DNA of 64,000 bases, from NCBI GenBank assembly GCA_002269645.1, contig NIVC01000725.1, positions 186,296-250,295 on the forward strand, read 5' to 3'. Shown here piece by piece: positions 883 through 40,424 of the stretch; position 1 is the first letter of the stretch, and every line of letters starts with the position of its first letter. This stretch comes from Macrostomum lignano (taxonomy: Eukaryota). A program made the translations under genes and the position numbers. A model generated the notes under the pieces. The model made no database searches, was not told the origin of the DNA, and worked only from the letters and a program-made list of their open reading frames with translations.

Positions 883-3800
883 TCGGAAAAAGACAGCCTC
901 TGCCTGCGTCTTGAGCCCTCCACCTGGCACGTCGCTCAGGCATTCAGTGACTTTCTTCAAGAGTTCAACTGGGAGAAGGCGACCCTGATTGTGTCAGAGA
1001 ACCTGCCCGGCCACGCTGAAATGATTCAGCACATGAAAGAGTCGGCGGAGTCTTCGCAGCGACTCACTGACTCGAGCGCTTTCAAGTGAGGAGTCGTAAT
1101 CGTATTTTCATTTGCCTAGCTGCCACGTATTGGCGAGCCCATTACGACCCCAGCTTGAGCCATAGACTAATCTAGCCAATGACCATGGATAAGCTGCTTT
1201 TCTGCCAAAATATTCACCCTGTATCAATTCAGCAGCTGCCGAGCAGGCAGAGCTTAAGACAGAGAATTCAGGTCAACTGCCATCCAATGTGAAGTCGCTG
1301 ACAGAAACTTGGCCCAAGCAGCGAACGCTACAACGCAGCGAACCTCTCTCTCTTCGTGTGTGTTAGTACTGTTCAGTTCATTCACTCCTAAATTGATTCT
1401 AATAAAAAGTTTTCTCCGGCAAACTAGGTCGCAGTTTTGGCAAAATAAACTACGGTTTTTAGAGATTAGATCGCAAAAAGATATAGCACCGGTATAGTAC
1501 CGACTTTTGTTGACAAATGCTCCTCTTTATTACAGGTTTGAAATCACCAGGGTGCTGAAGTTTCCCGGAATCAATAAATTAAGCGAAGTTCGAACTTGCC
1601 CAGAAGACAGTCGCTGCATCTGGCGATACAAATCAATTTTGAGACAGCTATACAACACAGAGGAGCGAATTTTCATTTTATACGGCATGAGGTGAGACGT
1701 CCCCAAATTTTTCAATTAAAACCACATTCAGTAGTTCACATAGTGCCACTCGATGCTTCCATTCTCTCAGCTCTGATCTCATGCTGCTCTACAAAGCGGC
1801 CAAGGACACCGGGCTGCTGCACCTCTTTGGCAACGAATACGTCTGGCTAATTTCTCCGCCTGCCATCGTTAGTCCGTCGGAAAATATCAAGGACGGCTTC
1901 ACCACTGGCTTGGAGAAGGAGCACCTGCCGGGCTTGTTCGGTATGGACTGATTAGCGCTAGACTCGCAAGTATCCAATAACTAGTAAATGCTTTCTAAAC
2001 AATAATCTGATTTCACGACAGGCTTCTATTACACGCCCGACATCAGCAAGGCTGCAGAAGCGGCCGCTATGTGTGGTACGAGGCGATGCGCAAGTACAAG
2101 GGCCAGCTGCTCAATTCTAGCAGATTAGACGAGTCAACCGTCTTGGGGCGACTGCATCCCAATTTCACGTATAAGCATAGCGATTATCGCAGACAGTTCT
2201 GGGAGTATGGAAAGCACATAACAAAGTAAGTATCTAAATACCTGCTACTACTTCTTACTACAGCTTGTCTGTCTTCGGTTGATCTTTGCTTCATTTGATG
2301 TAAAATTCTTTGAGCGCTCTACGAAATACAGAAACACCAAACATTAATAGTCCATATTGAATGAAGTTTGTAAGAGTAAGTTGACAAATACGAGCAATTT
2401 CAGATTGGCCAAGACTGCAGGCCACTGCTATAGGTGCGACGATATCGAACGCAGAGAGTACATTGGATTCAACAGCAATGGTGTGATTAACACCACACAG
2501 TTTGTTCTGGTAAACAGCCAAATTAAGAAAAATCAAACTCGCTGGTTTCCGGTGGGCAGTTGGAGCATGAGCAGCCGGCACGAGTCGCCCAGTCGCACCA
2601 GCTTCAGAATCGACAGCGTCATCTGGCCGGGATATTCGAAGACGCCACCGATCGGCCGGCCGAAGAAGTATCTCATGCGAGTGGCCACTCTCGAGGAGGA
2701 CCCGTTCATCACTTACAGACCGCTAGAGGCGGACGGCCGCTGCGGCGAGACGTCGCTGAAATGTCGCGTAGTAATGAGCAATGCTAGCGAGTTTCATTGG
2801 TCGAACGCTGACAATATCACTAAGCTGGACGGATCTGGCCGCTACCAATTCAACTGCTGCTCCGGCCTGTCTATTGACCTACTCAGAGAGCTGATGAAGG
2901 ACCTGGACTTCGACGTGGATCTGTTTGAGGTGCCGGACAAAAAGTGGGGCGGCTGGACGGTAAGTAAACTTTAATAAAAGTGCCTTGAAATTCCAAACGT
3001 GCATAGCTTGAAAGATTAGGGATGCGGTTCTACTTACTAAATTTGCTCTAGATGTAAAATCTAATAAAATATCAAAGGAAACAATGGCCCATCTTGGAGA
3101 GAGCATCTTTGTACCTTATACTTCCTCGAAAAATACTACAGGAAAACAAAACTATTCCGTGAGATTTTAACACCAAAACAACCAAGAGCACTTTTAACCT
3201 TGCCCTTAGAAACATCTGAAACTTGTAGCTCTTAATATACGCATTTTCGATTAAACAAACTTCTGTACAGGCGCAGGGTTGGAATGGGCTGGTCCGCGTT
3301 CTGTTGGAGGGCAAGGCTGACATGGTGCTGACTGCACTGAAGATCACACCGAATAGGAGCGAGCAGATCGAGTTCAGCGTGCCCTACCAACGCACCGGCA
3401 TCACCATCTTGGTAGCGCTGAGAGAGGGCGCGATCTCCACTAGGGCTTTTCTCAGTGAGTTTCAAAAACAGAACCAAACTGTGGAATGTTACAATGCTTC
3501 TGTCTCAATTCTTGAGACTGGAGCGTATACTGACTGTCAACCACTGTTGCAGAGCCGTACGACTATCCATCCTGGTGTTTAATCCTGGTGTTCTCCGTGC
3601 ACGCGTGCGGAGCAGCTCTGTTTCTGTTTGAGTGGCTCAGCCCCCAGGGCCTCGACAGAGGCAACGTGCCGCCCAGAGGTGAGTGATGACTTCTTATTGG
3701 AGTTCAAGCGTCGAGCAGTACTGCCGATTAAAAGACTATATAAATAATTTCGCGCTGTCAATCAAAAATGAAGCTCTCCACAACAGAAACCAATTTCTAA

Positions 3801-6800
3801 GCTACAATACCAATGCCATCTCACCACATCTGCTTCTTAAGCACCGATATTCGACACACAACCTCTGATGCAACTACCTAATCATCAATACCACCATTTC
3901 TGCACAAATCCTACAATCATAGCAGTTTCGAAACCAATCCACGAAACACTCTGTCAGAGCACAAGTTCAGCCTGTTTCGTTCCCTATGGCTCATCTGGTC
4001 GATGCTTTTCGGCGCCGCGGTGAACGCCGACAATCCCCGCGGCGTAGCTAGCCGTTTCCTTGGCAACATCTGGGCTCTATTCGCCCTGGTATTCCTGGCT
4101 TCCTACACGGCCAACCTGGCGGCATTTATGATAGCTGAAGAGTCATACTACGACCTGTCTGGCATCAATGACTGGCGTCTCATGGAGCCTGGCATGCACA
4201 GACCGCCATTCCGATTCGCCACTGTGCCGTCCGGAGCCACCGAGGAGAATGTGAAGATGAACTTTCCGCAAATGGCCGAATACATGCGAAACTACAGCAA
4301 GAGCAACTTGGACGAGGGTATAAAGGCGCTGAAGAACCAGTGAGTGATTTATTTTTGTTTGTTTGGTATCCACGTATATGGTAGTTAAAGGATCCGCAAA
4401 CTTCTTTATCTAAAGGGCCAGATAAAAACCGAGCTCATGGTTGCAAAGGAGAGAGGAAAGGAAAGGGAATAGAGGAGATAGAAAAAGAGGAGACGAGAAA
4501 TGAGAGATGAAAGGAGAGGGGAGAGGGAAGAGGAGAGAGGAGAGAGATGAGAAGAGCCATAAACCCTGAGCCGATCGCTATTGTTAAGTTTTAAGGCCCG
4601 ATGGATAGAGCTGGATAGAGATGATTCGCATGGGTTGGATGTGGCCCGCGACGAGGGAGTTTGCGGACCCCTGTCAGGTATTTTTAATGAAAGCCAGAGT
4701 TGTTGTTATGGGACGGTTTCGGCTTGTGAAGGGTGAGTTGGTGCAACAAGGAGCCCAAACTCGAGGTGAACTCCAGTTCGTGGGACAGAAATGAGAGCGG
4801 GCATCCCCAAAATTGAGTGGAATGCAATTAGTTCAGCAGTATTGGCCGTTATGAAGCGGAGAGGCGCTCCAACGTGCTCTGTGACAGTAGGATGCAACAG
4901 TATCCTAAGCTCGTAATTGGATGAAAGTTCGATTTCCCAGGATCAGCTGCCGTCGAGCCGCCGCGCTGTATGCATGCATAACTGTCATTCGTATTTCGTA
5001 AATGCAGGAACTACGAGTAGTTCTGGCTACTATATTATTATGCATAAAAATTGGAAAAGTCCCTGAGCATAGCCAGCTATAGCTATGAGCCCATGCATGC
5101 TTCAAAGTCCCACACATTTGAGAGGATTTCTGCTTTCATAGGGGCCGAATAAAATCCTCATCTGGTATCCCATCCCATTTTATCCCTCTTTGATTGCAAA
5201 GCTTTTCGGGTGTTTATTTTGACGTATCTATTTCGGATTGTGAAGCTCTCGGACACAGATGTGACCGTGTTTCTACGTGTGGGCCTTGCCCCCCGCAACT
5301 CGTAAAAGTTCAATTAAATGCATCTCTAAATTTTAACGCAGGTCTAGGTTGAATTCAGGTCCCAGTAAACAACTATCTATGCATCTGCATGGATTTTTTG
5401 CTGGCAAATATGATAAAACCGCTTAAAAATGAAATCAAACATTTGCAGCGAAATTGACGCCTTCATCTACGACGCAACTGTACTGCAGTACCGGGTCGGG
5501 AAAGACAAAGACTGCAAGCTGAAAACTGTTGGTAACTGGTACTCAATGACTGGCTACGGAGTTGGATTTCCCAAAGGCTCTGAGTGGAAGCCCGACATCG
5601 ATAGTCAGATTCTTATCTACAGAAAGAACGGTGCGTTCTTTGCTGCCTAAGCAGAGGTCGGGTAGACTCGCAGATAAAACCAACTTATGTTGAGAGGTGG
5701 CAAAGTAAGCTCGGTGGTAACACGTTTTACTCTCTATAAAAGCATCAGAGTACCAAAGTTGGCTTTGGTCTTGTCGCGAAAGAGAAATGAAGGCAGAACC
5801 ATGGCACAATGTTGTGCATGCGTTCCTCCTTACTGGTTGCGGGTCGACTGATCTATAGTAAGGCTAGTAGTTGTCAAAAAATTCACCCGTCGAGCTAACT
5901 ATAAAATAAAAACAAAAACTAAATTTTTTAGGCCTGCTGGAGCGCTGGAGCAAATACTGGTTCACGGGCGCCTGTCAGCAGAGCGGCCGTCTGCGAAACT
6001 CCAACCAGACGTTGGGCGTGAAAAACTTCATCAGCGCGTTCATCCTGTTGATCGGCGGGATGCTTCTGTGTTGCCTGCTGCTATTGCTGGAGCACTGGTT
6101 CTACCGCTACATGCGGCCTAGACTAAAGGATTTCGACAAGTACGGCTGCTGCGGCTAGTGTCTATAGTGAGTAAAAAATGACCTATTCTGGTCCTTTGTT
6201 CCTACCCTTCAACTTTCACTAGTCTTTGTTTAATTTACATGTAAGATTTTTAGACTATCGCAACTTGTGGTGCAACTAGCCCGCAAACTATTTGGATGTT
6301 TGCTGATACAATATTTTCCTTCGTATTCAAAGCGCATGTCTGCTTTTACTCATTGCTCCCGCGCAGACAGGCTAGAAAGGTCCGGAGAGAGACAAAATTC
6401 ACAAATTTTAACACGTAATTATTCCCAAGCCGGAAGAATTCGCGGCAACAGTCGACTTGGCAATATCTGGGTCCGAAAAAGGATGAGAGCCGGCTGCAGT
6501 TTCACTGGCTTTTCCCTGAGCTGCAGCGGATGGAGGCCCGGTCGCTGGGGAATATGCGCTTCCAGGTTGGCAGTCTCATTAGCATAACCAGCAGTTCCGC
6601 ATCCCACCGTGTCACTACTTGCACTCTCGCCCTCCCCGCCACTGTCCCGCCCAGTCACTCCGCCCGAGCCTTTCCTTTCGGGCATAAGAGGCGGGGCGAC
6701 CATGCAGCAGGAGGCGAGCTCAGGGCGGGAGCGACGCTAGAGGGCTCATAAATTTAATGCTGCCTGCTTTTGAGGTCAGCTGGATAATTGGGAAGAGAAA

Positions 6801-9800
6801 AAGACCGACTGGCAGGCAGTTCGAGGGGCGGGGGTGAGCAGCATTCCCGTGATGCAAGCTACATCTCATGGGAGGGAGTGGCAGTGTGTTTGCCTGAACA
6901 TCCCGAATGAAGTCGCAGTTCCGGAGACAGGCGCAGCTGCAGCCCAGGCTTTAAAATAGGCCCTGTTCTCCCTTTCCCATGCGCCATGTCCATCAAGAGG
7001 CCTCGAAAGCCAAGACAAACCAGTTTCACCGCCTGCTCAGGTGGCGCAGATGGCCCAAGCCATATCGAGTTTATTGTCGAAATAATTCAAACAAATTTCA
7101 TTTGAGGGCACATGGCACTATATAAGCACACCTTTGACTTTGGATTTTAATGCGGAATTTATTCGCTGGGTGCCAGTTTTATAAAGCGGTGTGAAAAAAA
7201 ACGGTAGTAAAATCAGATGAATATAGCGGTATGCTGATTATTTTTATTTTAATAATACCATTATATATTAATCAAGAATATATCAATAATTAATAATTAT
7301 TAAGAGGTCGTAGCTCAGTGGTTAGAGCGTCGGACTCACGACGTGAAGGTCGGGGGTTCGATTCTCGATCCTACTGGAAAATTTGTGTCCTTGAGCAAGA
7401 CGCTTAAATCTGCATTGTTCTATGGCCCACCCGAGTCTTAATGATTGTCCAAAAAACGCCATTATTTTAGGCTTCCAAAGCGAATTTAAACCATAGACAA
7501 AACTTGGTGAATAATCAGTTAACAGTTTATTTAACAAAAGTGACGATAGATACAGTAGGCAATTGAGAATGGCATAAATAGATATGAAAAATGCGTACAG
7601 GCACAACAAACAATGATATAATAACGCAAACTATGCGTAAATTTTGTATTTTGAAATAAATTTGATTAGGAGGGTGTCATTAAAGAGATTGGAAGATTGT
7701 GACTACTAGAATTGAAAGAGTGGGATTCCTAGTAGTAGGATATTTGGATTCCTAGCATTGGAAGATTAAGATTTTAAGAAATTAGAAGATTCAGATCGGG
7801 ATTAAGCATTGACAAACATATCATTCAGAAGAAAAAGTGGTCTCAAAAGCAAACTTTGTCACTGTCCACATACGAAGTCCAATGTCGAAGCCTAACTTAT
7901 TATAAATTAAAAGTACAATTAGAAAAGCTACAGTTGGCAAACATCGGCTGACGCACTGCTGTACTCACATCCAATTGTTGTTGCGCTACTGAAACGGCCA
8001 CTGTGCTACCGGCTGGTGAAGTAACAAACGAAGTACCTGCTAAATTGTTGAATTGTGTAGTCAACGAACTATCCAGCGTGCTGTCACTTGCAGCTGGCAG
8101 ACTTTTCACATCCGACACGTCACGTTGAAGACTAGTGCTGACAGCAGTCACGTCACGTTGAAAACTAGTGCTGACAGCAGTCGCGACCTTTTTCAATGCT
8201 CTATCCCTTTTGCGCGATAAGTAACGGCGCACAGTAGCTTCACTACGTTGTCCCGTAACGGCCATTATCTCGTCCATGCTGTGACCGCTGTCATATAGGT
8301 CCGAGATGCGCGTGACGCGAATGCAATGGTTCGTGTATCGCTGCGAAAGCGAACACACTTCACTGAGATGTCCCATGAATGAGCACAACCAGTTGACGCC
8401 ACGCACTTGGCGACTAGAAAACCTCAAGACTCCATTAGAAGCATTAGCGAGTGGTCGTGGAAAGAAATTGTCGACTCCTTCTGGCAACAATGACTGGTAG
8501 TGAAGAATAAGATCTCTCTCAGCTCCATAGATGCGACTCTGCTTTGCAACGTTGCCCTTGCACTTTGTCGGATCCGAAGACTGGTTTTTAGTTGGCAAAG
8601 GCGGAAGCTTCAGGTAGCTGTGCCCATCCGCGTCTTTACAATCTAGTAGTGTCCCACGTTTTCGAATCGACTCCAAATGTTCCTGGCCTCTCTCTCCTAG
8701 AGTATAGAAAATTACAAAAAATTACCTCATCTTGAAGTTTTTCTGCGGTCGATCTGTCAAAATGCTGCCTGATTTTTCGAAGGTCTCCGTCCTCAATAGG
8801 TTGAAACTGTTGAACAACTCCACCCTCAGCGCTGAACTGACGAACTTTCACTCGAAGCATTCTGTTAGCCGCTTCAAACTCTGGCCCATTCATAATGTCT
8901 GTCTGCATCTTGAGTATCATTCTTAGGTAACGCTGCACACCAGCTCGAATGCATACAAGGGTAGCAGGCGAATACAGACTTCCATCAGATTTCTTTAGTC
9001 CAAAATAATAGAAACGAAGATACTCTCCTAGCTTCTCGTTGGTCATGCTTTGTACTTCTTCAGTCGTATGCTTGCGCATGAAGGCAATGAATCGACCTCC
9101 CTGTTGCATCATTTGTTCTTGGGTGGAGCGCGGTAGCGAGTCTAACTCGACTTGGTCCATGTCGGCAGCCACAGACTCAGGTAATTCTGGCAATTTGACT
9201 CCGGAAACATAATCTTCCGAGTTAGCCTGCAGATCCGTGAGGAAGCCAATAAAATTCTGCAGATCGGTGTCGTCGTGGTGATCAGTATAACTTAGCGCAG
9301 TAATAAAGCTTAGTTCACTGTCGCTAACTCCATCCAACGATTCGCAGGGAAGATGTTTCCAATTGATCAAAGCCATTTTAAGACGAGCGTAAAATTCCTC
9401 TGGTCTTGCCTTAGAAAACAGACCCTTTAAAGAGCCTTTAGTCAAGGAAAATCATAGTCTATGGTACCCTCCAACTCTTCCCTCAAGTCTTTTCACCCAA
9501 GATTAAAAATTGTCTATGGCCTGTTCTTCGAGAAATTCTAAGCGGTACGCAATGAAAACATCTATGCGGTACGGAATGATCGGTACGCAATGATCGCGGG
9601 ACTCGTTTAGGCCATAGAACAATGAGCGTGTGTAGTATGTATTATCCTTGAATAATGATCGACAGCCACTCGTGGCTTCGCCACTCGTGACAGCGATCAT
9701 TATTCAAGGATAATACATACTATACAATCTACCATTGCTTCAGTTCACCCCGTTGTAAAATGGGTGCCAGCATTAGCTGGGGTAATTGAGGGTGTGTGGC

Positions 9801-11860
9801 GACCCCCCAGTCCTTGGACTGAACAGCCGTACGCAGCCTTCAGATGCGCCGCGCAATAGCTGCGGCTGAGCTGTCGGTTGCAAAACTGCCCATTAGGGCA
9901 GGTGTAATCAATTATTATTATTTTAATACCATTAAAGTATAGCTAATAGTAGGTAACTAATGCATTATCAATCGGTTCCTGAAGTGTGCCAATGAACTAG
10001 ACTCGTTAATGTATAGTTATTCCCGCAAAGATATTCAATCTGATTTAAATAAATAGCCAAACAAATCAGTCTATTCCCGGTCACTTTTACAGAGTATGGG
10101 CCAGCTATTGTCATTTGAGCAGTCAGTGAACCAAACCGTAGACCTGATGAAGCACCACAAATGCAAGAATCCAATTTGCGAGACTCAGCAATGGAAACTT
10201 CGACACGAGTTGGAGACTTCCAGACGGCGGCTGCAGAAGCTTGAGACCCTGCTGATGATGCAGCAGCAGCAGCAGCAACAGCATCAACATCAGCCAGGGG
10301 GTTGCGTCACCTGGGCTGATCAGCAGTCGCCTGTACAATGCGGCAGCGGTGGTCTGAATGGTTCGAGCCGGAGACGCAAGGGCGAGCCTGCTGGTGGCGG
10401 CGGCGGCGGCTACCTGGAGATTTCCGCTAACAGGTCTGCTTATCGGCTGTATAAGTGCATGCTGACTTCCGATAATAATTTCTTTTCTTTTAATTAACTT
10501 CTCTAGAAACTGAATTTGCCCAGATAAGATATCATAAAAATATCGTACTACTTTCTTTTGAAGAATTAAAAAAATTGAACTTGCTTATGGCAGGGGTTGG
10601 CAATTTTTTTACCTTAAGGGCCAGATAGAGAACGTAGAGAATGACTGTGGGCCGGAGGAGGGAAGAGAGGAGAGGGAATAAAGAAGAGAAAAGGGAAATA
10701 AGAGAAAGGAGAGGCGAGAGAATAAAGGAGAAGAAAGAAGAGAGGAGAGAAGAGCACTGAGAAGAGATGTCTCTCGTAAACATTGAGCGGGCCGGATAGC
10801 TATTGCCTATTGGGATGCTTCAAAAGACCCGAGGGCCGGATAGCTATTGCCTATTGGGATGCTTCAAAAGACCCGAGGGCCGGATAGCTATTGCCTATTG
10901 GGATGCTTCAAAAGACCGAGGGCCGGATAGCTATTGCCTATTGGGATGCTTCAAAAGACCCGAGGGCCGGATAGCTATTGCCTATTGGGATGCTTCAAAA
11001 GACCCGAGGGCCGGATAGCTATTGCCTATTGGGATGCTTCAAAAGACCCGAGGGCCGGATAGGGAGGCTCTGCGGGCCGCATGTGGCCTGCGGACCGGAG
11101 TATTTGAAGGTTTGATTTAACCTGAAAACAAACCTGCCGGATTAAAACTCTTCACTTTCTTAACACTAAATTGGAAAAACATTTCGAAGTTCGGCTTTTG
11201 TAATCCGCCTGACTGACGGTGCCAAAACATGAAGCGCTTGAGACCAAACTGACGCTAATTAACCAATGAACGGACCTTAGGACCAATTCAGTCCGATCAG
11301 CAGCAAAATTCGTTTCCGGAGGATTTCACTTTTTTCTTTTGTTATAATGACTGACTCCCACCCGCAGCTCCGAGGCCGAGCTGTCTCGTCGCCTGCAGCC
11401 GGAGCAGCAGTTCTCAACCCAGGTCGTCCCAGTGCAACAGCACTGCCAGCCGAGCTCCCAATCGTCAAAGTTGATGCCAGGCCCTGAAACTGCTTTGCCT
11501 AACTGCCACCAGCGCCGTCGGCAGCCCCAGCCTCAGCATTCTCATCCTCATCTACATCAGCAGCAGCAGCAGCACCACCACCACCACCATCAGCCGCTGA
11601 TCGATCACCGGTTTCCAAGAAGCCCGAACTCCAGCTACCAGTTAAGCCCGGTGTCCAATCTGGAACGGCCTCCTTCGTCGCAGAGATCAAACGAGATTCT
11701 CTACAAGCACCCCAGCATCCGGAGCTCGCCATCGGGATCTGCCCTCATGACCTACTCGATGCCGCTGCCAGCTGCGCCACCGCCCCCAACGGACAGCGGC
11801 GCTCGAGATGATGCAGCTACCGAGAAAGAGGCTTTAGTTGTCAAGGAGTCTGTGCTGTAG
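883..11860 (+). CDS. GRIN2: NMDA-type ionotropic glutamate receptor subunit 2 (GluN2/Nmdar2-like), multi-exon, 5' end upstream of window
   Basis: GT-AG exons read manually: 883-1085, 1536-1691, 1771-1940, 2022-2225, 2404-2959, 3271-3454, 3553-3678, 3958-4339, 5449-5630, 5932-6166, 10093-10433, 11368-11860. Motifs: VATLEEDPF, CCSGLSIDLL, YTANLAAFMI, FIYDATVL, C-tail SMG..HKCKNPICETQQWKLRHEL and a terminal ESVL PDZ ligand. Two apparent 1-nt deletions (~2067, ~6156). Confidence 0.95.
4388..4673. mobile_element. Non-autonomous hAT-like MITE with AG-rich interior
   Basis: Imperfect terminal inverted repeat AAGGATCCGCAAAC ... GTTTGCGGACCCCTG; shares AAGGGCCAGATA and ATGTGGCC motifs with the copy at 10591. 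Confidence 0.5.
7304..7417 (+). mobile_element. 5' half of a tRNA-headed CORE-type SINE (interrupted)
   Basis: A/B-box head (GTAGCTCAGTGG...GGTTCGATTC) followed by CCTTGAGCAAGACGCTTAAATCTGCATTG; colinear with the intact copy at 59904-60017. Confidence 0.85.
7418..9732 (-). mobile_element. Crypton-type tyrosine-recombinase DNA transposon (DUF3504/KCTD1-related family), 2315 bp
   Basis: Inserted into a SINE with CATTG on both sides (7413-7417, 9733-9737); carries a YR reading frame and structured ends. Confidence 0.85.
7900..9376 (-). pseudogene. Tyrosine recombinase ORF (~490 aa if repaired), frameshifted at 8689-8692
   Basis: ORFs 8636-9445 and 7900-8676 join if GAGA is removed, giving RRGQEHL. 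Motifs: YSPATLVCIRAGVQRYL, TKN, YTNHCIR, TGQRSEATVRRY, and a C-terminal FSNCTFNL. Confidence 0.85.
9733..9925 (+). mobile_element. 3' half of the interrupted CORE-type SINE
   Basis: CATTGCTTCAGTTCACCCCGTTGTAAAATGGGTGCCAGC... is near-identical to 60013-60198 and ends in an (ATT)n tail. Confidence 0.85.
10591..11104. mobile_element. hAT-like MITE containing a 44-bp tandem array (~10786-11060, about 6 copies)
   Basis: Starts CAGGGGTTGGCAA..AAGGGCCAGATA and ends GGGCCGCATGTGGCC; unit GAGGGCCGGATAGCTATTGCCTATTGGGATGCTTCAAAAGACCC. Confidence 0.55.
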
Positions 11861-16595: not shown

Positions 16596-19500
16596 CTAGG
16601 CGATGCCGCTCAATTGGCTGAACAGCCTGCAGGCGGCAGCGTAGAGCAGGCGGTACTGCTCCAGGCTCACCCGGGCCCCGGTCTGTCTGGCGATGCCCTG
16701 CACCAGCTCGGGAAGGGAGACCGCCGGCCGCTGCTGCTGTAAAATGGTTAATTAATAAATGCATGTATGACAGTCCTACTGGTAAACTCTTTTTCGATAC
16801 ATATCGGCATGCTTAAGATATGGCTGGTGAATCGCAGGACAATCCACCGGGAAATTTTTGTGCAAGAGCCGTAAGGTCTGGACGTTTTACCACTGAGTTT
16901 CTCTGAGCAATAGCCAATGTCACCAAGTTAATGGAGCATAAAATGGTACTTGAGACTGATCCTGCAGCCACGTGTCGATTCAGGCTTTTCTCAGGAGAGG
17001 AACAGCTGATTTGGATTTTCGGCCTCTCAAAAGGGTCTTATTGACCTAATTTCATTTGTTTCGCTTCAAACTCTTTTCAAACTTTCAACAAATATAAACA
17101 CTTGCTTCCTATGTATAAAAATACTTTCCGGAGTTAAAAAAGTCAGCCCAAGGACAACTAAAGCAACGTATATACAGGACGCGACACTCAGGTTTTACGG
17201 AAAAAGTTTTGAAGGCCACTTTTCGCCGAAAAATACACTACGGAGATAGGAAGTTTTCATTTTTTCAGCAAAATAAATCGTTATTGCTTTCGATAGGAGG
17301 CAGAGGTCAGCAAATAATGGCTTTAGTAGTCCTTGTGTCACCCTAGTTCTAGTCGAATACACAACAACTATGCATAAATGCACACTGCTAGTTTAGAAGG
17401 TGAGAAATTGACACAGCTAAGTGCTAAAATTGGAAAATTCCTATGCAGCCAGCGCATTTTCGAAGTGAAATTGGGCCTTTCAAAAAGCTCGCCAATTTTG
17501 AAGAGTCCCACCCTCTTACTAAACCATTAGTCATCCCAATTATCCTAATATTTATTTTTCAATCAATTGCATAACACTCCAACTAAAACTCTTGAAATAA
17601 GCATGAGGAATACCAGCTTCCAAAAAGGTTTTACACGGTGCCTAAAAACGCATTGGACCGAAATCCTGGCCTGTCAAGTCAGATCGAATTAACCTCCCAA
17701 CCAGAGTATAGGAAAACAAGAATTCTGTCGCCTGTGGCCTGATTAGCAATCTGCATTAATAAAATCTAGCCGTGGCTCCGGGGATTGAAGCGTATGAGGG
17801 CTGCATGGCCCCATAAATTTGGCAGCACAGCCGCTGGGGGGGGGGGGGGGGGCAGGGGGCGTCACAACCCGAAACGAAGTGATGCGAGCTGGCAAGCAAG
17901 ACCCATTCGAGAAAGTATCGAACAGCAGCACACACAGCTCGTGGAATCCAAGGGCTGGAAGGATCCCGAAACTCGTTGCTTCTCGTGTTAGTGGAAATCG
18001 ATTAATATCCTAGAAGCTGCTCAGTGTCCACTTGGCAGGTCAGGAATAAACCTTTTCAGAAAAAAAGTAAAAAAAGGTCGCATACTATTCTAGGTTTTGA
18101 AAATGTTATGTCATTTGGTATAATTGAGGTCTCAAATTCGAAATTCCAGAATTTCGAATCATAATGTCATAATGTAATCAAAATCATAATGTAATCAAAT
18201 CAAATCAAATGTAAAATCATTGGCAAATCTAGCACTTTAAAAATTGGGACAGGAGGGTAACCCAGTTTGGAAGATAACAGAGCAAAAGTCCTAGCTACAC
18301 TACTCTGTTAAGGCATACATTTCGATTTCTATTTATAAATAAAAATTCTTCCTGGGTCAGAAAGATGGTTGGCAAGAACTGTGGGCGTGAGGTGGCTGCA
18401 GAACGGAGGGTCCGGATTGGATAGGACAGGGTGTGAGGTAGCTGCAGAACGGAGGGTCCGGATTGGATAAGACAGGGTGTGAGGTAGCTGCAGAACGGAG
18501 GGTCCGGATTGGATAGGACAGGGTGTGAGGTAGCTGCAGAACGGAGGGTCTGGATTGGATAGGACAGGGTGTGAGGTAGCTGCAGAACGGAGGGTCCGGA
18601 TTGGATAGGACAGGGTGTGAGGTAGCTGCAGAACGGAGGGTCCGGATTGGATAGGACAGGGTGTGAGGTAGCTGCAGAACGGAGGGTCTGGATTGGATAG
18701 GACAGGGTGTGAGGTAGCTGCAGAACGGAGGGTCCGGATTGGATAAGACAGGGTGTGAGGTAGCTGCAGAATGGAGGGTCCGGATTGGATAGGACAGGGT
18801 GTGAGGTAGCTGCAGAATGGAGGGTCTGGATTGGATAGGACAGGGTGTGAGGTAGCTGCAGAACGGAGGGTCCGGATTGGATAAGACAGGGTGTGAGGTA
18901 GCTGCAGAACGGAGGGTCCGGATTGGATAGGACAGGGTGTGAGGTAGCTGCAGAACGGAGGGTCCGGATTGGATAGGACAGGGTGTGAGGTGGCTGCAAA
19001 ACGGAGGGTCCGGATTGGATAGGACAGGGTGTGAGGTAGCTGCAGAACGGAGGGTCCGGATTGGATAGGACAGGGTGTGAGGTGGCTGCAAAACGGAGAG
19101 TCCGGATTGGATAGGACAGGGTGTGAGGAGTGCACAGGGAATGGATGTGACTGTAGAATAGGATTTTATTGGACAAGACAGGGAGTAAGGTAAGTTCTGG
19201 GGAATGACGTGGCTGTAGAACGGTGGGTTTTGCTTTGATAGGACAATGGGGAAGTGGGCTGGGTCAGGTCGATGCACTTACCATCGCTGCCTCGCCGTCC
19301 ACATCGCCGTCGCTCACGCCATCAACGAGCAGCAGCGCGCCGGCCTCCAGCGAAGCCATCAGGTGGGTCAGGGCCAGGCACACGGCTGCCATACCATCAA
19401 ATTTTCTTCGACCACCTGGCTGACCGACCGCCACGGTGGACACCAGTAACGGCGGCGAGTGCTGCGTCGTTGGTGTCCGGCTAACACCGCCACCGGGCAG

Positions 19501-22500
19501 GGCACCAGCCAGCTGCCAGGCGCAGGCGGCGGCGGCGGCTAAATCGGCGGCGGCTGCGCGCAACCGGACGCCGTCGACGGACGGCAGCGGAGTAGAGAAG
19601 TCGACGGCGAGGGGTTGGACAACAAATAGGCGGGAGGGGATTCGGCCGCCGGGCCGGCGAATGCGAAGGCAGTGGAGCGCGAAGTCGCGGTAGTTGCGGC
19701 ACTCGAGGAGTTGGACGACCAGCTCGTCTGGCGGCGGGATTTGAGGTTAGTGGAGTTGAGGATTTGGAGTGACAGCTTCCAGGATACGGAGTGACAGATG
19801 CTAAGATACGGAATGACAGGTTCTAAGATACGGAGTGACAGATGCTAAGATACGGAATGACAGATGCTAAGATACGGAGTGACAGATTGTAGGATATGGA
19901 GTGACAGATTGTCAGATGTGTAGTGATAGGTTCTTGAAGGGCAGAGATAAGTTTAAAATATCAAGGCTAAGTCAACACAGAGCATTTTAAGCATACACCA
20001 GGAAAAGTAAAACTCGCACCTTTGCCCTCGCCGTAGCCGACTTCGTCTCCGGGTCTCTGCGGCCACAAATTCACTGCATCGCTGGCTGACGCGAGCAGCC
20101 AGAGGACCCCGCAGCCCGAGTCAGCTACCCGGCGCCAAAACTCGCGCCGTCGCTCAGCAGAGGCCGCCGGGGGCGCCAGCATCGCCGGGTAGCCCCGCTG
20201 GAGTCGTCGCTGCTGGCCGCTCAGCGTCACAGTTATCGGCCCGATGTCGTCTGCACCCGGACCAGCGTCGGCACCTTCAATGGCGGCGAAGTCGGCTTCA
20301 ACCTGGGCGAACTCGGCGCCAAGTCTCGGCGCGCTGCCTGCCAGCGCTTCGAGCCGCGCCAAAGTCCGTCTGGATGCCGCCGAGGCCGACCCATCGAGCG
20401 CGTAGACGGAGCCGGCGCTCACGCGTGGCCGGTGCAGTCCCGCGGCGTCCACGTCGTTTTGGTGCAGCTCCGACAGCGGCGCTGCGCTCAGCAGCAGGTG
20501 CCCTGCAGTCAGCGGTTGCCGCTGCTTGTCGCCTCCAGCGACGGGCGTTGACCTGTCCGACGCGGACGCCGACGCCATCGAGGCACGCCGGTCCGCGGCT
20601 GCGGCCATCGCGATGGACGCCGCCGCAGTCGGAAGAGTAGCGTCTCCATCGTCGACAATGACGCCGGCCTCCGCCAGTTCCTCAGGCGCGAAGATGCCGC
20701 TGGACTCCATGATCGACGTGTCGGCGTCGTCCTGGGCGAGGATTGGGCATTGGATTGGAGATCGCGGGATGTGGATTGGGAACCTTTGGGATGTGGATTG
20801 GGAACCTTTGGGATGTGGATTGGGAACCTTTGGGATGTGGATTGGGAACCTTTGGGATGTGGATTGGGAACCTTTGGGATGTGGATTGGGAACCTTTGGG
20901 ATGTGGATTGGGAACCTTTGGGATGTGGATTGGGAACCTTTGGGATGTGGATTGGGAACCTTTGGGATGTGGATTGGGAACCTTTGGGATGTGGATTAGG
21001 GATAGTGGGATGTAAATTAGGGATCATGGGATCTGGATTGGGGATCATGGGATTTGGATTGGGGATCATGGGATTCGGATTGGAATCCGACGGATCTGGG
21101 ATTCAGAAAAATGTCTCTGGGATTCGGGATGTCGTTTTGAATCAGATTTGAAACTTACCAAGGCATAGCTGGGTGGAGTATCAAGACAGGAGATTGCGAA
21201 GCACATTTTACTATGGGACTATTCGTTGGGGATTAGGAATTAGGAATCAGATCGCTCACCCGGGACGTGAGGGACTCGATCTCCGTCTCCTCGGAAATCC
21301 GGTTGTCGCCGCCCGACCCCGGCAGACCCAGCGAACCGCGGGTCAGGGTCAGGTCAATCTCGTCAAGGTGGTCGCACTGGCGTAGCATTTCATTCACCTG
21401 CAATGGGGCGAAGTGGAGCAATTAGAGCAATCAGCTGCCCCACCGTCCGCCTACCGAGCGCCCCAACATCCGCCTACCGAGCGCCCCACCATCCGCCCAC
21501 CGTCCGTCTGCCCATCCGCCCACCGTCCGCCCCACCATCCGCCTACCGTCCGCCTACCGTCTGCCCCACCATCCGCCCACCGTCCGCCCACACACCTGTT
21601 CCATGCTCGCCCCAGCGCTCAGATCGCAGTCTCCAACCCGCAGCAGACGGTCGCCAATTCTAACAGAAGCCAGGGCGGGCGGCGCCTCCCCGTCTGCGGT
21701 CGGCAGGACAGCCAGCACGCAGACGCCGCCACTGGGCAAGTCGCCAAGCTGCAGTGGCAGCGGTCGGGAGCCGTCAGCTTCTCGCGGCAGCGGCACCAGC
21801 ACTGAGTAGGCAGCCGCCGACTGCGGCAGGTACGGCGACCTTAATTAGGCAGGTTGGGTGAACTGGGGTTGTGGGTGAATTGGGGTGGTGGGTGAATTGG
21901 GGTGGTGGGTGGATTGGGGTGGTGGGTGGATTGGGGTGGTGGTGAATTGGGGTGGTGGGTGGATTGGGGTGGTGGGTGGATTGGGGTGGTGGGGTATTTA
22001 GGGTGGTGGGTGAATTGGTGTTGTGGGTGGATTAGGGTAATGGGTGGATTGGGGGTGGGTGGGTGAATTGGGGTGGTGGGTGAATTGGGGTGGTGGGTGA
22101 ATTGGTGTTGTGGGTGAATTGAGGTGGTGGGTGAATTGAGGTGGTGGGTGGATTGGGGTGGTGGGGTATTTAGGGTGGTGGGTGAATTGGTGTTGTGGGT
22201 GGATTGGGGTAATGGGTGGATTGGGGGTGGGTGGGTGAATTGGGGTGGTGGGTGAATTGGGGTGGTGGGTGAATTGGTGTTGTGGGTGAATTGAGGTGGT
22301 GGGTGAATTGAGGTGGTGGGTGGATTGGGGTGGTGGGTGGATTGGGGTGGTGGGGTATTTAGGGTGGTGGGTGAATTGGTGTTGTGGGTGGATTGGGGTA
22401 ATGGGTGGATTGGGGGTGGGTGGGTGAATTGGGGTGGTGGGGTATTTGAGGTGGTGGGTGAATAGGGTCGCGGGTGAAATGGGCCTAGAAAGCCTAGAAA

Positions 22501-25500
22501 GCCCACCTGGTCGCAATGCTGATTCCCACACCAGTGCTGCCGTCGTCGCTGAATGAGTCGCCGGCCTCGGAGCCGGTGGCGCCGCTGACAGCCGCCGCGG
22601 CCTCCGTCTCGTCCTCCTCTAGGATCTCCTCGTCGTCGGTTGGCGCGGGGTCGAACTCGCGCAGCACGCGGATCCGAACGCGGCGCGGGGCGGCCCGCAG
22701 CGCCTCCACGCAGTCCTCGTGACGCATCCGGGATACGTCGGTGTCGTTGACGGCCAGCAGGCGGTCGCCCGGGCGGAGAACCCCGTCTGACAGGGCCGGG
22801 TCGCGCACGATGCTGCGGATGTAGCAGCCGCCCGTGGTGTCCTGGCCGCCTGCGACCAGGAAGCCCAGGCCGCCGCCGCTGACCTCGTCCTGCATGAGGA
22901 TGAATGAGAATGCGCTTGAGTACAGACCAACACAGACATTGAGCACTGCAGACCTTGAGCATCACAGACCTTGAGCATCACAGACCTTGAACATCAAGGA
23001 AATGAAAAGCCCACAGCTTTAGGCCAGGACACTTTGTACAATTGAAATCAGCACACACCTTGTACAGCACCATCACACACCTTGTACAGCACCATCACAC
23101 ACCTTGTACAGCACCATCACACACCTTGTACAGCACCATCACACACCTTGTACAGCACCATCACACACCTTGTACAGCACCATCACACAACTTGTACAGC
23201 ACCATCACACACCTTGTACAGCACCATCACACACCTTGTACAGCACCATCACACACCTTGTACAACACCAGCACACACCTTGTACAGCACAGTCTCCACC
23301 AAGCCAGGCGCCTCCTTGGCGTCGATCTCAGCCAACCGTCGGGTCATTCGATCGATCAGCGAGTCCTCGTCTATCGACGTAGACAGCCGCAGAGAGTCAG
23401 TGGTCGGCGCACCTGCCGCCGACGCCTCCTCAGTGGGCTCTGGGCTGAGCAGCAGTGGCACCCGGGGCGTGCGATGTACAACCGCATGGGACTCGGCGCC
23501 GACCGCAGCATGGCAACAATGTCGCCGTGGCTCCGGCCGTACACCGGCTGATCGGCGATCTCCAGCAGCAGGTCGCCCTCCCGCAGCAGCCGCTGCACGG
23601 ACTCGTGGCTGTGCTCCAGCACGCGCTTCACTCGGCCAAAGTGGCGCAGCGTCGAAACTCCGGCAAGGCCGTCGTCAGAAGAGACGCTGTCCCCGGCGCC
23701 AGATGTTGAGATGCCGGGATGGTAGCCGCCTGACACCTGCCCGGTATGATAGATTTCATTAATTTTCTAATCAAAAAGTTTGTGAATAATTCATAAGAAG
23801 ATGGCCAGATGCCAACTTTTTAAAAGCAAAGAGCAAAGAATCATTTACTAGTATATAGATAACCATAGGGAAATTATCGATGACGTAATTTGCTATTTTT
23901 AGAACGAAACATCCATTCTATTTTTAGCTACAAAAAGGTCAATTTCATGATGACGTAAGTTGCTATTTTTAGAACGAAAAAGCTATTCTATTTTTAGCTA
24001 CAGATGGGTCAATTTTATGATGATGTAAGTTGCTATTTTTAGTTATAGACCAATCAATAGATGATGACTTATATTGCTAGTTTTAGAAGAAGAAAAACTG
24101 CATTTTTCAACCGGCCTAATAAATCAGTACCTGAATGCCCACACTGCCACCGTCGGTCTTGTACACCGTAACCGGCAGGCAGTCGCAGTGGCTACTCAGC
24201 TGGGGGAAGGCCTCTTCAAGCCGTTTCCGGCCGGCCAGAACGGAGGCCGAGTCCAGCAGGCTGGAGTCCGGCGAGCCGACGCTGACGCCGACGCCTCCGC
24301 TGCCAACGCCGCCGAGGCTGTCACCGCCGTCTTCCGTTGTTGTCGGACTATCGGGCGGCGGCGGCAGCGCCTCGGGCGGCTGCGAGGACTGGCCGCGCTG
24401 CAGGTGGAACACGGAGATCTCCGGGGCGGACAGCAGCGTCTCCATGGCAACCTTGTGCGTCACCCGTTCCAAGCTGACGCTGTTCACCCACAGTATTTTG
24501 TCGTTGATACGCAATCGGGCGTCCAGATCGGCGGCGCCGCCTTTGGCGATGGACTTCACGTAGATGGCGCCACCCTCCAGGTTGGTGTTGGTGCCACCCT
24601 GCAGATGATTGATGGGGCTTCTATCTAACTTCATTGCAAGCCCAACCAGTTAGAATAAGTTTCGCATTCTTTACTTTTTTACTGTACGTCTTATTCTAAG
24701 AAAATTGCCACTCACCCAGACGTAAAAGCCGAAGCTGTCGTCCTTCTTCCTCAGCGTGACCTTGAACCGGTCGCCGGGCAGCAGGTCCCGGACGCCGCCG
24801 CTGCTCACTCGGCTGAGCTGAGAAGCTTTCCTATCCAGCTCCAGCTGGTGCCTGCTCTTCACGATGATCGTGTCCTGCGTGGAGGCCGTGCCCTCCGAGG
24901 AGCCTGGCGCAGTATGGGGGTTGGCGGACTGTGAAGAGTCACTTAATCACTCATTTACTCATTTACTCACTCACTCATTCACTCTCTCATTCATTCACTC
25001 ACTCACTCACTTACTCACTCGCTCAATCACTGACTCGCTCACTCAATCACTCACTTATTCACTCACTTAATTAGTCAATCACTCACTCACTCACTCACTC
25101 ACTTGCTCACTCAATCACTCACTCACTCACTCACTCACTCACTCACTCACTCACTCACTCACTCACTCACTCACTCACTTACTCGCTCACTCACTCACTC
25201 GCTCACTCACACTCACTCACTCACTCACTCACTCACTCACTTCACTCACTCACTGACTCACTCATTCGCATTCGCTCACTCACCGCCATCATCGTCGCCC
25301 GGCCCGGCCACGGCAGGCGTGACAGTGAAGGTGGGCAGCGTGGGATTGGAGGCCCATCGCCGCCCGCTGCCGCCAGCCCCCGGAGTCAGTTTAGTCGGCG
25401 ACGCGGAAGTTGCAATCTGCGGCGGCGGCGGCCGGAGCGGCGGCACCGGCTTCGTGAACGCAAAGCCGACGGCGCCCGCCATCTCCTGGTCCTCGGCGCC

Positions 25501-28500: not shown

Positions 28501-31500
28501 ACCATTTGATCTTCCCTTAGCACCCTTTGAGCTTCCCCTAGCAACCTTTTCATCTTCCCTTAGCACCCTTATAGCATTCCCTAGCAACCATTTGATCGTC
28601 ACTTAGCAACCCTTTGAGCATTCCCTAGCAACCATTTGATCTTCCCTTAGCACCCTTATAGCATTCCCTAGCAACCATTTGATCGTCACTTAGCAACCCT
28701 TTGAGCATTCCCTAGCAACCATTTGATCTTCCCTTAGCACCCTTTGAGCATGCCCTAGCAACCGTTTATCTTCCCTTAGCAACCCTTGGAGCATGCCCTA
28801 GCAAACGTTTATCTTCCCTTAGCATTCTTAGAGCATACCCTAGCAACCGTTTATCTTCCCTTAGCAACCCTTGGAGCATGCCCTAGCAACCGTTTATCTT
28901 CCCTTAACACCCTTAGAGCATGCCCTAGCAACCGTTTATCTTCACTTAGCAACCCTTTGAGCATTCCCTAGCAACCATTTGATCGTCACTTAGCAACCCT
29001 TTGAGCATTCCCTAGCAACCATTTGATCTTCCCTTAGCACCCTTTGAGCATGCCCTAGCAACCGTTTATCTTCCCTTAGCAACCCTTGGAGCATGCCAAA
29101 ACAAATTTAATTGTCTTCACCCTTTGTCATATGCAATTGCAGCTTATCACACTCTTCCTTTTTCACTCAAAACGACTCAACGAGCTGCCGGTCACTCACG
29201 GCACCAAATCGACGCTCTCAGGATAAAATTTGAGTCGCAGCGTGAGCTGCAGCAGGGTGCCACCGCGGCCGCTGCCTCCTTCGCCGCCGCCACCGGCGCC
29301 ACCGCCAGATCTTTTCAGAGAGGCGGAGCGCGAGGACGCGCCGAGCCAGTCTTTGGGCGCCTGTTTGGCCATGCGGACGTTCTCCAATATGAATCGGTTT
29401 TCGCCGTCTAAAATTAAAAAAATATGTCAATATTCGCATATTCGAGTTTGCTACTATTAGTGATAAAAATAAGAGGAACGTATTTTTGACATCTATCGGC
29501 CGCTATCGTCCTCACCGACTAGCATGGTCAGTCCCAGCAGGTGGTCGATGCCGGAATTGACGTAGTCGAACACGCAGCGGATGAGCTCGCGGCCCAGAGT
29601 GTTGGCCGAGCAGGTCAGGGCGAGCCTCTCGCCAGTCGGTAGGTGAACTCTGACCTCCCTGTTCAGTTTGTTCTGATCTCGCTGTTAAGCAGATCCCAAG
29701 TTAAGCAGAGTTAATAGTGGTTAGTACACAACTAAATGTTTCGTCCATTAAGGAAACAGTCATAATCAATTCTACTTCTCAAACTCACCGACAATCGCAA
29801 CGGAGATTTCGACGAACTCCCTGCCACAGTGGCCGATGATGTCGATAGGGCGACAGGTGTCGGCGCGTTGCCCTGGTGGGCTGTAAATTTAGCGCCTGTG
29901 AACTCGTCGTCAAAGCCGCCGATATCCTCAGTGTCGGCCTCCAAATGGAGCAGCGAAGTGTCATCGATTGCATCGTCGTTGACGTTGAGAGCCCTGGCAG
30001 CGGCGACCGTCCCGGTGTCGCCAGTCACTGCCGCCTGCGGCTGCTGCTGTTGCTGCTGCTGTAGCGGCGGTGCCGACATCGGCAGTGTCGGCAGTCTGCG
30101 CCGCGCGCTCGGCGAAGATTTCGGCGACGATGACGGTAGCGGCGGAGTGGGCAGCTTAGCGGGCTGCGACGAAGGCTCCGCAGCTGGGATCGGCGGTGTA
30201 AAGGCAGCCAGATCGGCGCCGGTGTCGGTGCCGACGTCCAGGGTTTGCTTCAGCGACGGTTCGAGCACCAGCGGCTCGGTGGCTTCGTCGACTGTTGCGC
30301 ATCTGCATGACATAGCATTTTTTAAATTTAGTCTTAAAAATATGAACAAAAAATGCCTATTTGCCTACTTGTTTAATAAGTAGCTAAAAAGTCAAATTAC
30401 TAAGAGTATTCACCTAGCCGTGACGACCAGAGCTTCAACGGCTTGGTCTGGAATCGTTGATAGACTTGGCATATTTAGTAGACCGGAACCGCTGCTTTCC
30501 AAGGCAACTGTAGATGCGTTCAACTCGCACTGAACAGAGCTGTCTGTGACTTCGGGATTCATAGGATCAGCCTTTGACTGACCGCTGCCGGAATCATCCA
30601 GCGGCATATGCGTCGGCGGTTTTGATGCTCTCGACTGTGCGTTAACTTCATAGTCTATTGAAATTCTGTAGCTGAAAAAATATTCAGCGTAAAAATAGGT
30701 AAAATAGTTGGTTTGCGATTGTCATCTACTTATAGTAGACATATTGAACATTCTTTTAACAATCGTACGAATCATGTAATAAGAAATTACATCGAACTTC
30801 ATTTTTTGTATCTTTGCTCACCATAGTCCACCAACTCCAGTAATTGCTCCATCAGCGAGCGCACAAGCGTAATCATACATTGTCATGAGCTGCCCATCAT
30901 CCCTATTGGTCATATTGGTCTGCGACTTGTCCGGGACGTACAGTTTGTGATCAGCGATGGACACGAGTAGGTCGGCGTAGTTTGGCAAAGGACTTAGATA
31001 AGGAAAAGGAAGAAAGAAGAAAAATTACCAGTAAATGAATTTTTACGCTATTCACGTTTTAGCCTTTTTTGGCTTTGGTTGATGGCTGTAGACGAGCATA
31101 GTGCAAACAAACAGCCTTGTTAAGATTTTTACGCAACATATCGGCATCATTAAATATGAATAAAACATCAAGTTCGGAGTATTTTTTAAAGAGGGGAACG
31201 AAATACGTTTGGAAAAAAATTAAAGTAAAAAAGCTTGCGTTGCTTTTGTGCGCAAAAAGGAGCTGTAACAGCCAGGTCCCACCGAGATTCGAACTCGGGT
31301 CGCTGGATTCAAAGTCCAGAGTGCTAACCACTACACCATGGGACCTTAAACGAGCCGAAAAGACTGGAATCTATTTAAACCCATGACGGTAGAGCAAATG
31401 AATGAGTCCCTTATAATAGTAAGGTCGCTATTCATTTACAGCTCTTCTAGCTCGTATTTCTACCTATTATTCTAACAATATAATCTTCTTCGACCTTCAA

Positions 31501-36549: not shown

Positions 36550-36729
36550 TTAGGCACGTTCTAACAAGGTTTGAGCCAGGCGCTTTGTAGATGTAGATTG
36601 AAATTAATCGCATTGAATTCTTATTCTAAACATTTGATGGAATTTGCAGTGTACTGAGACATCATTTGAACACTCAGGATTCAGGTACTGTACACTGTGT
36701 GTATGTACATTTTCAAGTTATGTCTGTTC

Positions 36730-39795: not shown

Positions 39796-40424
39796 TGAGA
39801 TTAGGCTGTATAGTGACTCCTATCTGGCCTAGTCAAGGGAGGACGACTGACCCCTCACTAAAAAGGCATAAAGTCAACGCAGAATGTCCGAAGACGCCAG
39901 GAATTGAACATGGCTTCAAATGTTTTTTTTTATTAGAAAAGCAGATAAACATATCGATAAATATTATACAAAGCAATGAAGCAGCTAGAATATACAGCAA
40001 TAAAAGACGCTGTATTTAAAAAAGCAAAAAATGATAACGTTAGAAAAGAACGCACTTATACTACATATTTATATTACTGCTGCTGCTGCTGCTGAGACAA
40101 TGATCCACCGATTAGAGTCGATGAGCAATTTCAATTCCAATACGAGTAAATCAGCACTGTAAACAATTGTAAATTATTATCATATAGAGAACAAGTCTAA
40201 TTACAGTGATACAACTAGTGTCAGAGGGCCAATTCTACATGCGGTTAAGCCTTGAATAGTTTGCTAATAAAAAGTGGTTAAATAACAAAATAAACTGATG
40301 CCTATTACGGCGGACGACATGCTTAAAAGTAATAATTTTAATTTAAAGTTAACAAAAAAAAATCAACAAACGGGAAAAGGACTCCGCGCACTTTATTAAT
40401 CTCTTTAACTGTCAAAGTGTTTCT

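Follow-up and report, generated by a model that had tools for sequence, protein, structure and literature searches.

We observed that a 2,315-bp insert encoding a tyrosine recombinase splits a short interspersed element (SINE) in Macrostomum lignano, and that comparison with an intact paralogue of this SINE resolves both ends of the insert to the base pair. The insert occupies positions 7418-9732, with its gene on the minus strand, in a 64,000-nt stretch of contig NIVC01000725.1. We refer to this whole stretch as the window, and coordinates are positions in it unless another contig is named. We read the insert as a Crypton DNA transposon of Macrostomum that follows a Goodwin-type pathway, with a joined-end form and exchange within a short core, and we put the probability of this reading at roughly 0.78. 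By its protein the element is apparently an ordinary CryptonA, and the conserved architecture of its ends appears to be new and undescribed for animal Cryptons.

Split SINE and recombinase gene

The 5′ half of the split SINE (7304-7417, plus strand) consists of a tRNA-like head and then the SINE body through a left CATTG, and is 87% identical to positions 6-118 of the intact SINE. In an Rfam scan the tRNA match of the head is weak (7304-7373; 24 bits versus a gathering score of 29). The 3′ half begins at a right CATTG and extends on the plus strand from 9733 to approximately 9916, with 90% identity to intact-SINE positions 110-285. The intact paralogue (59904-60190, plus strand) lacks the insert and serves as the empty-site reference; it carries a single CATTG, at 60013-60017. 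The left pentamer (7413-7417), preceded by AAATCTG and reading CAATG in gene orientation, forms the 3′ junction of the element, and the right one (9733-9737), followed by CTTCAGTT, forms the 5′ junction. When the intact SINE was compared with the window by BLASTN, exactly two pieces were returned (SINE 6-118 at 7310-7420, 87%; SINE 110-285 at 9733-9916, 90%). The initial annotation had described a SINE split at 7417 and 9733, with one CATTG in the copy at 59904 and 2,315 bp in between; these positions can be read directly from the sequence, the BLASTN comparison agrees with them, and the length is correct.

With the two flanks joined through one CATTG, the resulting sequence can be aligned to the intact SINE without a gap at the junction. 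The direct repeat is exactly 5 bp, because the bases outside CATTG differ on both sides (G/C on the preceding side, T/C on the following side). Past the pentamer, donor and target also share AGATT, one or two bases away from the core, a likeness too weak to claim. No second copy, fragment or solo end of the insert was found when the window was searched for them.

The recombinase is encoded by an open reading frame (ORF) at 7900-9376 on the minus strand. It starts with ATG at 9376 and runs in one frame from 9376 to 8723 and in a second from 8721 to 7900, including the stop, with an extra base at about 8722; the joined reading comprises 491 residues. All other ORFs in the insert are shorter than 100 amino acids, the majority of them overlapping that of the recombinase. 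No reverse transcriptase, RNase H, methyltransferase or second gene was found among the ORFs of the 2,315-bp insert. The +1 frameshift site (8716-8722, minus strand) lies within or beside a run of T on the coding strand. Across this site six homologues from Macrostomum and several more distant ones are colinear (DEV.F....Y.LGERGQEH), and for that reason we interpret the break near 8722 as a 1-nt frameshift and not as an intron. A 29-nt GT..AG intron at 8693-8721 was considered and rejected: it is unneeded, it would remove conserved residues, and the homologues are colinear there. Judged from its reading frame, the window copy is dead through the 1-nt frameshift.

The joined reading contains the catalytic set R229, K263, H350, R353 and Y385, all in columns that are invariant or nearly so in the homologue alignments, which bears out the R..K..HxxR..Y pattern noticed earlier. 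At the position where a His or Trp normally precedes the catalytic Tyr, the window protein has Q376 (about 8252-8254, minus strand). Gln stands there in all Macrostomum members (TGQRS, TGQKS or TGQQS), and other families have His (TGHK). The C-terminal tail of the ORF includes an in-frame 33-nt tandem duplication (8108-8173, minus strand) that is absent from P0002, a relative described below. We also observed a C-terminal N-C-x-F-x-x-C-x-F motif (NCSFSNCTFNL in the window, 7900-7935, minus strand), with which P0002, P0004, P0009, P0010 and P0012 end as well. This motif is kept although the families are otherwise only ~30% identical, and it is placed downstream of the catalytic domain, behind a linker of low confidence in the structural model.

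The best protein matches are from M. lignano itself, namely P0001 (79% identity overall) and P0002 (56%), with several others next. In gap-free stretches P0001 is ~93-96% identical to the window protein, but it is broken and part of a fusion with an unrelated gene model; P0002 is intact. Pfam domains in 19 homologues comprise PF00589 (Phage_integrase) in 14, PF12012 (DUF3504) in 10 and PF25561 (QRICH1 domain) in nine, and those homologues match the window protein with E values of 1e-36 to 1e-54. Searched by sequence, a family profile detects XerA, Tn1549 Int and Cre, and it recovers 1,644 clusters (50% identity) at E <= 1e-30 and ~18,000 at E <= 1e-3. The intact relative P0002 is predicted to adopt a two-domain Cre-like fold: its AlphaFold2 model (predicted local distance difference test, pLDDT, 74) aligns with Cre across both domains over ~325 columns (E 8e-10; template-modelling (TM) score ~0.6, normalised to Cre).

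The DUF3504 domain derives from animal Crypton recombinases (Kojima & Jurka, PMC3212892). From its sequence we assign the element to the CryptonA type, given a recombinase that is DUF3504/QRICH1-type by its homologues, no reverse transcriptase and a 2.3-kb single-gene body. The original designation as a Crypton-type tyrosine-recombinase element is thus upheld by the catalytic set, the homologues, the exact ends and a 5-bp repeat present once in the empty site. A syntenic or domesticated host gene had been named as an alternative; the element is not one, because it is an insertion relative to the paralogous SINE. Its gene is also frameshifted and has retained the catalytic residues. Domesticated DUF3504 genes (KCTD1, KIAA1958, ZMYM2-4, QRICH1 and WOC) share with the window protein the ancestry of the recombinase fold and of the N-terminal QRICH1-type domain. 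They are, however, syntenic host genes that have lost most catalytic residues (PMC3212892), whereas the window protein keeps R-K-H-R-Y and sits in an insertion.

Architecture of the element ends

In gene orientation the element opens with the core CAATG and GTAGATT, followed by a hairpin (9726-9629), ACGCT and the inner arm of a 25-nt inverted repeat (9624-9600). Downstream of the inner arm lie three CGGTACGCAATGA repeats, the 5′ leader, the ORF, the 3′ trailer and finally the outer arm, which ends ...GGCCATAGAA-CAATG (7437-7413). The outer arm (7413-7437) forms the 3′ terminus, core included, and is 88% complementary to the inner arm (9600-9624). The latter starts CATTGTTCTATGGCC in gene orientation and carries an inverted core, CAATG on the plus strand at 9620-9624. 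It is positioned ~110 bp inside the 5′ end, and the hairpin fills the gap. The 15-mer CATTGTTCTATGGCC occurs twice in the window, both times in the repeat arms, against 0.1 occurrences expected.

The hairpin (9629-9726, minus strand) has a 33-bp stem formed by arms at 9629-9661 and 9694-9726. On the sense strand its 32-nt apex comprises a tandem GA/GA internal loop and a GCGAAGC mini-hairpin. An Rfam scan of the element gave sub-threshold microRNA-precursor and tRNA matches only, which we take to reflect a generic hairpin and the SINE head. Each of the three subterminal CGGTACGCAATGA copies (9543-9593) contains a core-like CAATG or GAATG. TCTATGG is concentrated in the element as well: six of its 13 window sites fall in the 2.3-kb insert, against ~0.25 expected, and five of these six belong to the non-coding ends. 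We regard the TCTATGG and xAATG motifs, repeated at both ends, as probable binding sites of the recombinase.

When the two ends are joined, the outer arm, hairpin and inner arm make up one palindrome of ~150 nt, with a fold of -63.1 kcal/mol (z = -13.5). In this fold the core is base-paired to the inverted copy in the inner arm, and the junction adjoins a bubble of GTAGATT opposite ACGCT. The folding potential of joined sites reached z = -13.5 and -14.7. Neither long terminal repeats nor classical terminal inverted repeats are present; instead, the element has one terminal arm, one arm ~110 bp internal and the hairpin. Animal Cryptons were described in 2011 as having no terminal repeats, direct or inverted (PMC3212892), and the ends reported here depart from that description by the 25-nt repeat and the hairpin.

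We compared the window family with seven others at 27-56% protein identity. One of these is represented by L001, the M. lignano contig NIVC01002014.1, which carries P0002; the six distant families (27-32% identity) come from short metagenome and Logan contigs. L001 has the same order of parts, an apex 23-mer (CACGAGTGGCGAAGCCACGAGTG) identical to that of the window, and the same 5′ start, with GTAGATT directly after AATG. The stem sequences of L001 and the window differ but the pairing is kept: 95% of cells are paired, and in 11 of 32 pairs both partners have changed. The distant families likewise show a hairpin, an inner arm, the gene and an outer arm at the 3′ terminus. They comprise the families of P0018 (L004-L009), P0015 (L014-L016), P0013 (L010-L013, contigs that do not include the inner arm), P0010 (L017), P0012 (L018) and P0009 (L019, which stops within the outer arm so that the terminus is unseen). 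Five of the six distant hairpins align with one another and share 30 consensus pairs, 16 of them with compensatory changes. Each of the eight families is a single-ORF unit; the window element measures 2.3 kb, and relatives with two defined ends measure ~2.0 kb from one end to the other. The tyrosine recombinase is the sole encoded enzyme in the seven related families too. Two contigs from other sequencing runs, L002 and L003, lack ends and resemble transcripts or truncated contigs; they were set aside as uninformative on termini.

In all eight families the inner hairpin stem also holds a core-like xAATG/CATTx (9656-9662 and 9693-9699 in the window; 117-125 in L018). Core-like sites thus mark not only the terminus but also the inner repeat arm and the hairpin, and the window element has further ones in its three subterminal repeats.

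Taken alone, the 98-nt hairpin is compact and self-contained, with a weak likeness to a microRNA precursor (34 bits versus a gathering score of 62), as might be expected if an unrelated foldback element or miniature inverted-repeat transposable element had landed beside the Crypton end. However, its position relative to the gene and the inner arm is constant in eight families, two Macrostomum families with only 56% protein identity have the same apex, and the hairpin lies within the SINE-delimited insert. We therefore consider such a chance landing extremely improbable.

The ends also bear on whether the insert might be a remnant or non-autonomous derivative of a DIRS/Ngaro tyrosine-recombinase retrotransposon, an alternative raised in the initial annotation. 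The inner region (hairpin arm 2 plus inner arm) is complementary to the joined ends, formally like the logic of inverted terminal repeats and internal complementary region in DIRS1. As in DIRS1-type elements, an internal segment thus complements the joined ends and a tyrosine recombinase would act as integrase. DIRS elements, however, encode reverse transcriptase, RNase H and methyltransferase and move via RNA, whereas the insert has none of these ORFs. All eight families, moreover, are single-ORF units of ~2.0-2.3 kb, and the homologues carry the DUF3504 and QRICH1 domains that are a Crypton-derived signature (PMC3212892). A DIRS/Ngaro origin is accordingly very unlikely in our view, and the insertion relative to the paralogous SINE disposes of the host-gene alternative named beside it.

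Recombination core and proposed mechanism

The boundaries could be compared between insertions in the P0018 family. Four contigs from different samples (L004-L007) have four unrelated flanks that diverge from one another at the same two points. At the 5′ boundary the flank is followed by ACAATA-TATGAAT... in three contigs and by ATAATA in one; at the 3′ boundary ...GATAG-ACAATA precedes the flank in all four. In L008 (SRR35212564), of the same family, the element runs from end to start (...GATAG-ACAATA-TATGAA...) with a single ACAATA. L010 (SRR22824338), of the P0013 family, is an end-to-start contig too, with no 5′ flank to fix the core. The initial annotation had asked whether other copies would show different boundaries. 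The check is confined to related families; across the four P0018 insertions the end bases are shared and the core is constant apart from the one 5′ ATAATA.

The core is CAATG in the window family, TAATG/TAATT in L001, ACAATA in the P0018 family, ACAATAT in both the P0013 and P0012 families and CAATA/TAATG in the P0010 family. It is GAATG in the P0015 family, with AAATG at the 5′ end of L015 and GAATT at the 3′ end of L016. No core could be read at either end for the P0009 family, whose contig stops in the outer arm. The defined cores share xAAT(G/A). Because the repeat is family-constant, lies within the element's inverted repeat and is single in the junction, we interpret it as a recombination core and not as a target-site duplication.

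In one copy alone, a 5-bp direct repeat is indistinguishable from a target-site duplication, and the CATTG pair could then have been made by a transposase acting in trans, such as a DDE enzyme, with the recombinase gene as cargo. Several observations speak against this. The insert has no other substantial ORF, and the inverted repeat is not terminal at both ends, since one arm is ~110 bp internal. In the P0018 family the same hexamer flanks the element at four sites and occurs once in the end-to-start junction, and xAAT(G/A) is common to the family cores. Finally, the inner arm carries the inverted core, so that the core belongs to the element. Together, these data leave the target-site-duplication reading with very little probability.

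In the Goodwin-type pathway that we favor, the element would be excised to a circle or another joined-end form, circular or head-to-tail, containing one core (CAATG in gene orientation). The predicted joined junction reads ...CAATCTAC-CATTG-TTCTATGG... The Cre-like recombinase would then, most likely, swap strands between the core of the element and the identical CATTG of the SINE by conservative site-specific recombination. The expected outcome is one core per junction with nothing else duplicated. The attachment site would not be a simple short site, since a continuous palindrome of ~150 nt arises only once the ends join. The crossover point would lie in the stem of this palindrome beside the small GTAGATT/ACGCT bubble, with the TCTATGG and xAATG repeats as putative binding sites for the recombinase. 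A circular intermediate, an exchange of strands inside the core and a function for the palindrome are all inferences.

Some observations weigh against this reading. At the DNA level there is one copy of the window family, so its boundaries come from one insertion and from analogy with relatives, and for this family we saw neither a circle nor an empty allele or excision footprint. The pentamers flanking L001 differ by one base (TAATG/TAATT). L016 shares its 5′ flank with L014 but has a different 3′ flank, and its 3′ core is GAATT versus GAATG; this difference could stem from a chimeric assembly or from rearrangement by the recombinase, such as has been reported for Chlamydomonas Cryptons. The junction in L008, and probably that in L010, could stem from tandem copies and not from circles. 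A search of the short contigs for terminal overlaps, indicative of circularity, found none; the contigs break at the hairpin instead. The window protein itself matches Pfam below threshold (PF25561, E 0.0014; PF00589, E 0.077), so its assignment to the DUF3504 group runs via the homologues. Current activity is doubtful, because no intact protein of the window family was found among the 5.8 billion clusters searched. The earlier description of the element as near-complete and recently mobile can be kept in its first part, as a fair description of an element with a frameshifted ORF. Recent mobility of the window family is plausible but not supported, the only other member found, P0001, being broken as well.

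We also considered a refinement of the favored pathway in which a folded single strand is the recombination substrate, which we hold tentatively and at well below even odds. In one version the joined ends would form, on the sense strand, a long hairpin that serves as the attachment (att) site itself, and the recombinase would act on it as XerCD does on CTXphi attP(+) or IntI on attC. In the other version, hairpin arm 2 and the inner arm would act as a splint, like the internal complementary region of DIRS1, and hold the ends of a linear single strand together.

The sense-strand fold contains tandem GA/GA internal loops in seven of the eight families, where the opposite strand would give TC/TC mismatches. 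Five of these families have two such loops in each hairpin, spaced 22-23 nt apart, and the two Macrostomum families have one. Apex loops of the form G(N)1-2A occur in seven of eight families (GAA, GTA, GTAA or GTTA), and the Macrostomum apex is a GCGAAGC mini-hairpin. Tandem sheared G.A pairs, GNA loops and mini-hairpins of the d(GCGAAGC) type confer unusual stability on single-stranded DNA. The unpaired positions are constant and the stems compensate, in 11 of 32 pairs between the window and L001 and 16 of 30 among five other families. As duplex DNA, the left GAGG and the right CCGAA do not form inverted copies of a single site, and two equal protein-binding sites thus do not explain them. 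Loop orientation is identical in all copies seen, with no flip/flop variants. This strand-specific GA signature is suggestive of a folded single strand.

Other points count against a single-stranded substrate. With DNA parameters the sense strand folds better than the antisense strand by only 0-5 kcal/mol, which is too small a difference to pick a strand. A single-stranded intermediate is known for no Crypton. Inverted protein-binding sites co-vary too, so the repeat arms alone do not separate the models, and the hairpin could instead serve as an RNA, promoter or origin element.

Genomic setting and relation to known systems

Exons of a GluN2-like glutamate receptor (Lig_chan, SYTANLAAF motifs) are recognized at 2351-6155 on the plus strand, the last of them being that of the fourth membrane segment (M4) at ~5910-6155. 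The element lies ~1.15 kb downstream of this exon, and no receptor exon was recognized beyond it. The initial annotation had placed the element in an intron of this NMDA receptor gene. We could not sustain this placement, as all recognized exons are upstream and a 3′ UTR (untranslated region) or intergenic position is equally possible. Around the intact SINE, two near-identical ORF segments on the plus strand (57587-58777 and 61965-62777), ~4.4 kb apart, each contain a serine/proline-rich repeat and then a conserved domain. This looks like a tandem gene duplication, and the intact SINE sits between exon-like ORFs of the first duplicated copy. A large share of the window consists of long tandem arrays of short units that are open in several frames (18295-19277, 20509-21151, 21841-23762, 32030-32539, 36644-37589, 40338-41553, 44465-45464 and 48557-50286). 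The sole tRNA call by ARAGORN in the window is a tRNA-Gln (TTG) gene at 31273-31346 on the minus strand.

Further observations concern the surroundings of the related elements. The 5′ flank of the marine-metagenome element in L017 (1-163) consists of tandem (C/T)AATTGTT units and is rich in AACAAT, which is core-like in reverse complement. In the 3′ flank of L014, ~280-330 nt past the 3′ end of the element, there is a tRNA-like T-arm (GGTTCAAGTCCCTC), and the insertion may lie in or near a tRNA-derived repeat. L001 additionally contains an unrelated element at 199-969, with 46-nt terminal inverted repeats, which encloses a TCTATGG/CCATAGA cluster (781, 808 and 880; cluster 781-886) resembling the Crypton-end motifs.

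In its single DUF3504/QRICH1-related recombinase ORF, absence of reverse transcriptase, size of ~2 kb and apparently low copy number, the element resembles animal CryptonA (PMC3212892) and the fungal Glomhoppers branch (PMC13465315). CryptonA boundaries were not definable as late as 2026 (PMC13465315); unlike published CryptonA, the window element has exact ends, a 5-bp core, a terminal/subterminal inverted repeat and a conserved 5′ hairpin. Platyhelminthes are not among the six animal phyla listed for Cryptons in 2011 (PMC3212892), and we found no literature linking a Crypton to Macrostomum. A search for literature on Crypton hairpins or palindromes, a weak one, brought up none among the papers that it listed, and Repbase or Dfam may already hold such consensus sequences.

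A further point of comparison is the active CryptonF-1_cRei of Chlamydomonas, which inserts and excises at a 5-bp core (CACCG at the element end, CAYCG in the target; PMC9977147). Both elements have a 5-bp core common to element end and target and fit the Goodwin circle model, and one core mismatch is tolerated. CryptonF-1_cRei differs in belonging to another Crypton group, in its core and in that its activity was directly observed, and the part of that report considered here mentions no hairpin or split palindrome (PMC9977147). The statement that base-pair-resolved ends are rarely available for such elements holds for animal Cryptons only, as those of the Chlamydomonas CryptonF have already been reported (PMC9977147). 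Beyond Cryptons, the joined ends resemble CTXphi attP(+)/XerCD and integron attC/IntI in having two inverted copies of site plus core ~100 nt apart, a foldable stem with the crossover site and conserved unpaired bases. The CTXphi and integron sites are bacterial and are proven single-stranded substrates, whereas the window element offers folding potential and strand-specific conservation only.

Cryptons are the least understood class of eukaryotic DNA transposons, and their animal groups are the source of the DUF3504 domain in ZMYM2-4, QRICH1 and KCTD1. The window and its relatives provide a rule for finding the ends of such elements: core, 5′ hairpin, inner repeat arm, gene, outer repeat arm, core. 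With the consensus core xAAT(G/A) and the junction sequence, they become annotatable from sequence. A defined donor-and-target recombination assay for a eukaryotic Cre-like enzyme is now possible, as is a test of the palindrome as folded DNA, and the internal complement of the joined ends is a concrete feature to set against the internal complementary region of DIRS1. It is conceivable, though on balance we doubt it, that these families represent a widespread animal CryptonA clade with a structured attachment site formed at the joined ends, a ~150-nt palindrome with sheared-G.A loops on one strand that is recognized as folded or extruded DNA or used as a DIRS-like splint. If true, eukaryotes would have a first counterpart to the folded att sites known from integrons and CTXphi, and Cryptons would be linked structurally to DIRS retrotransposons.

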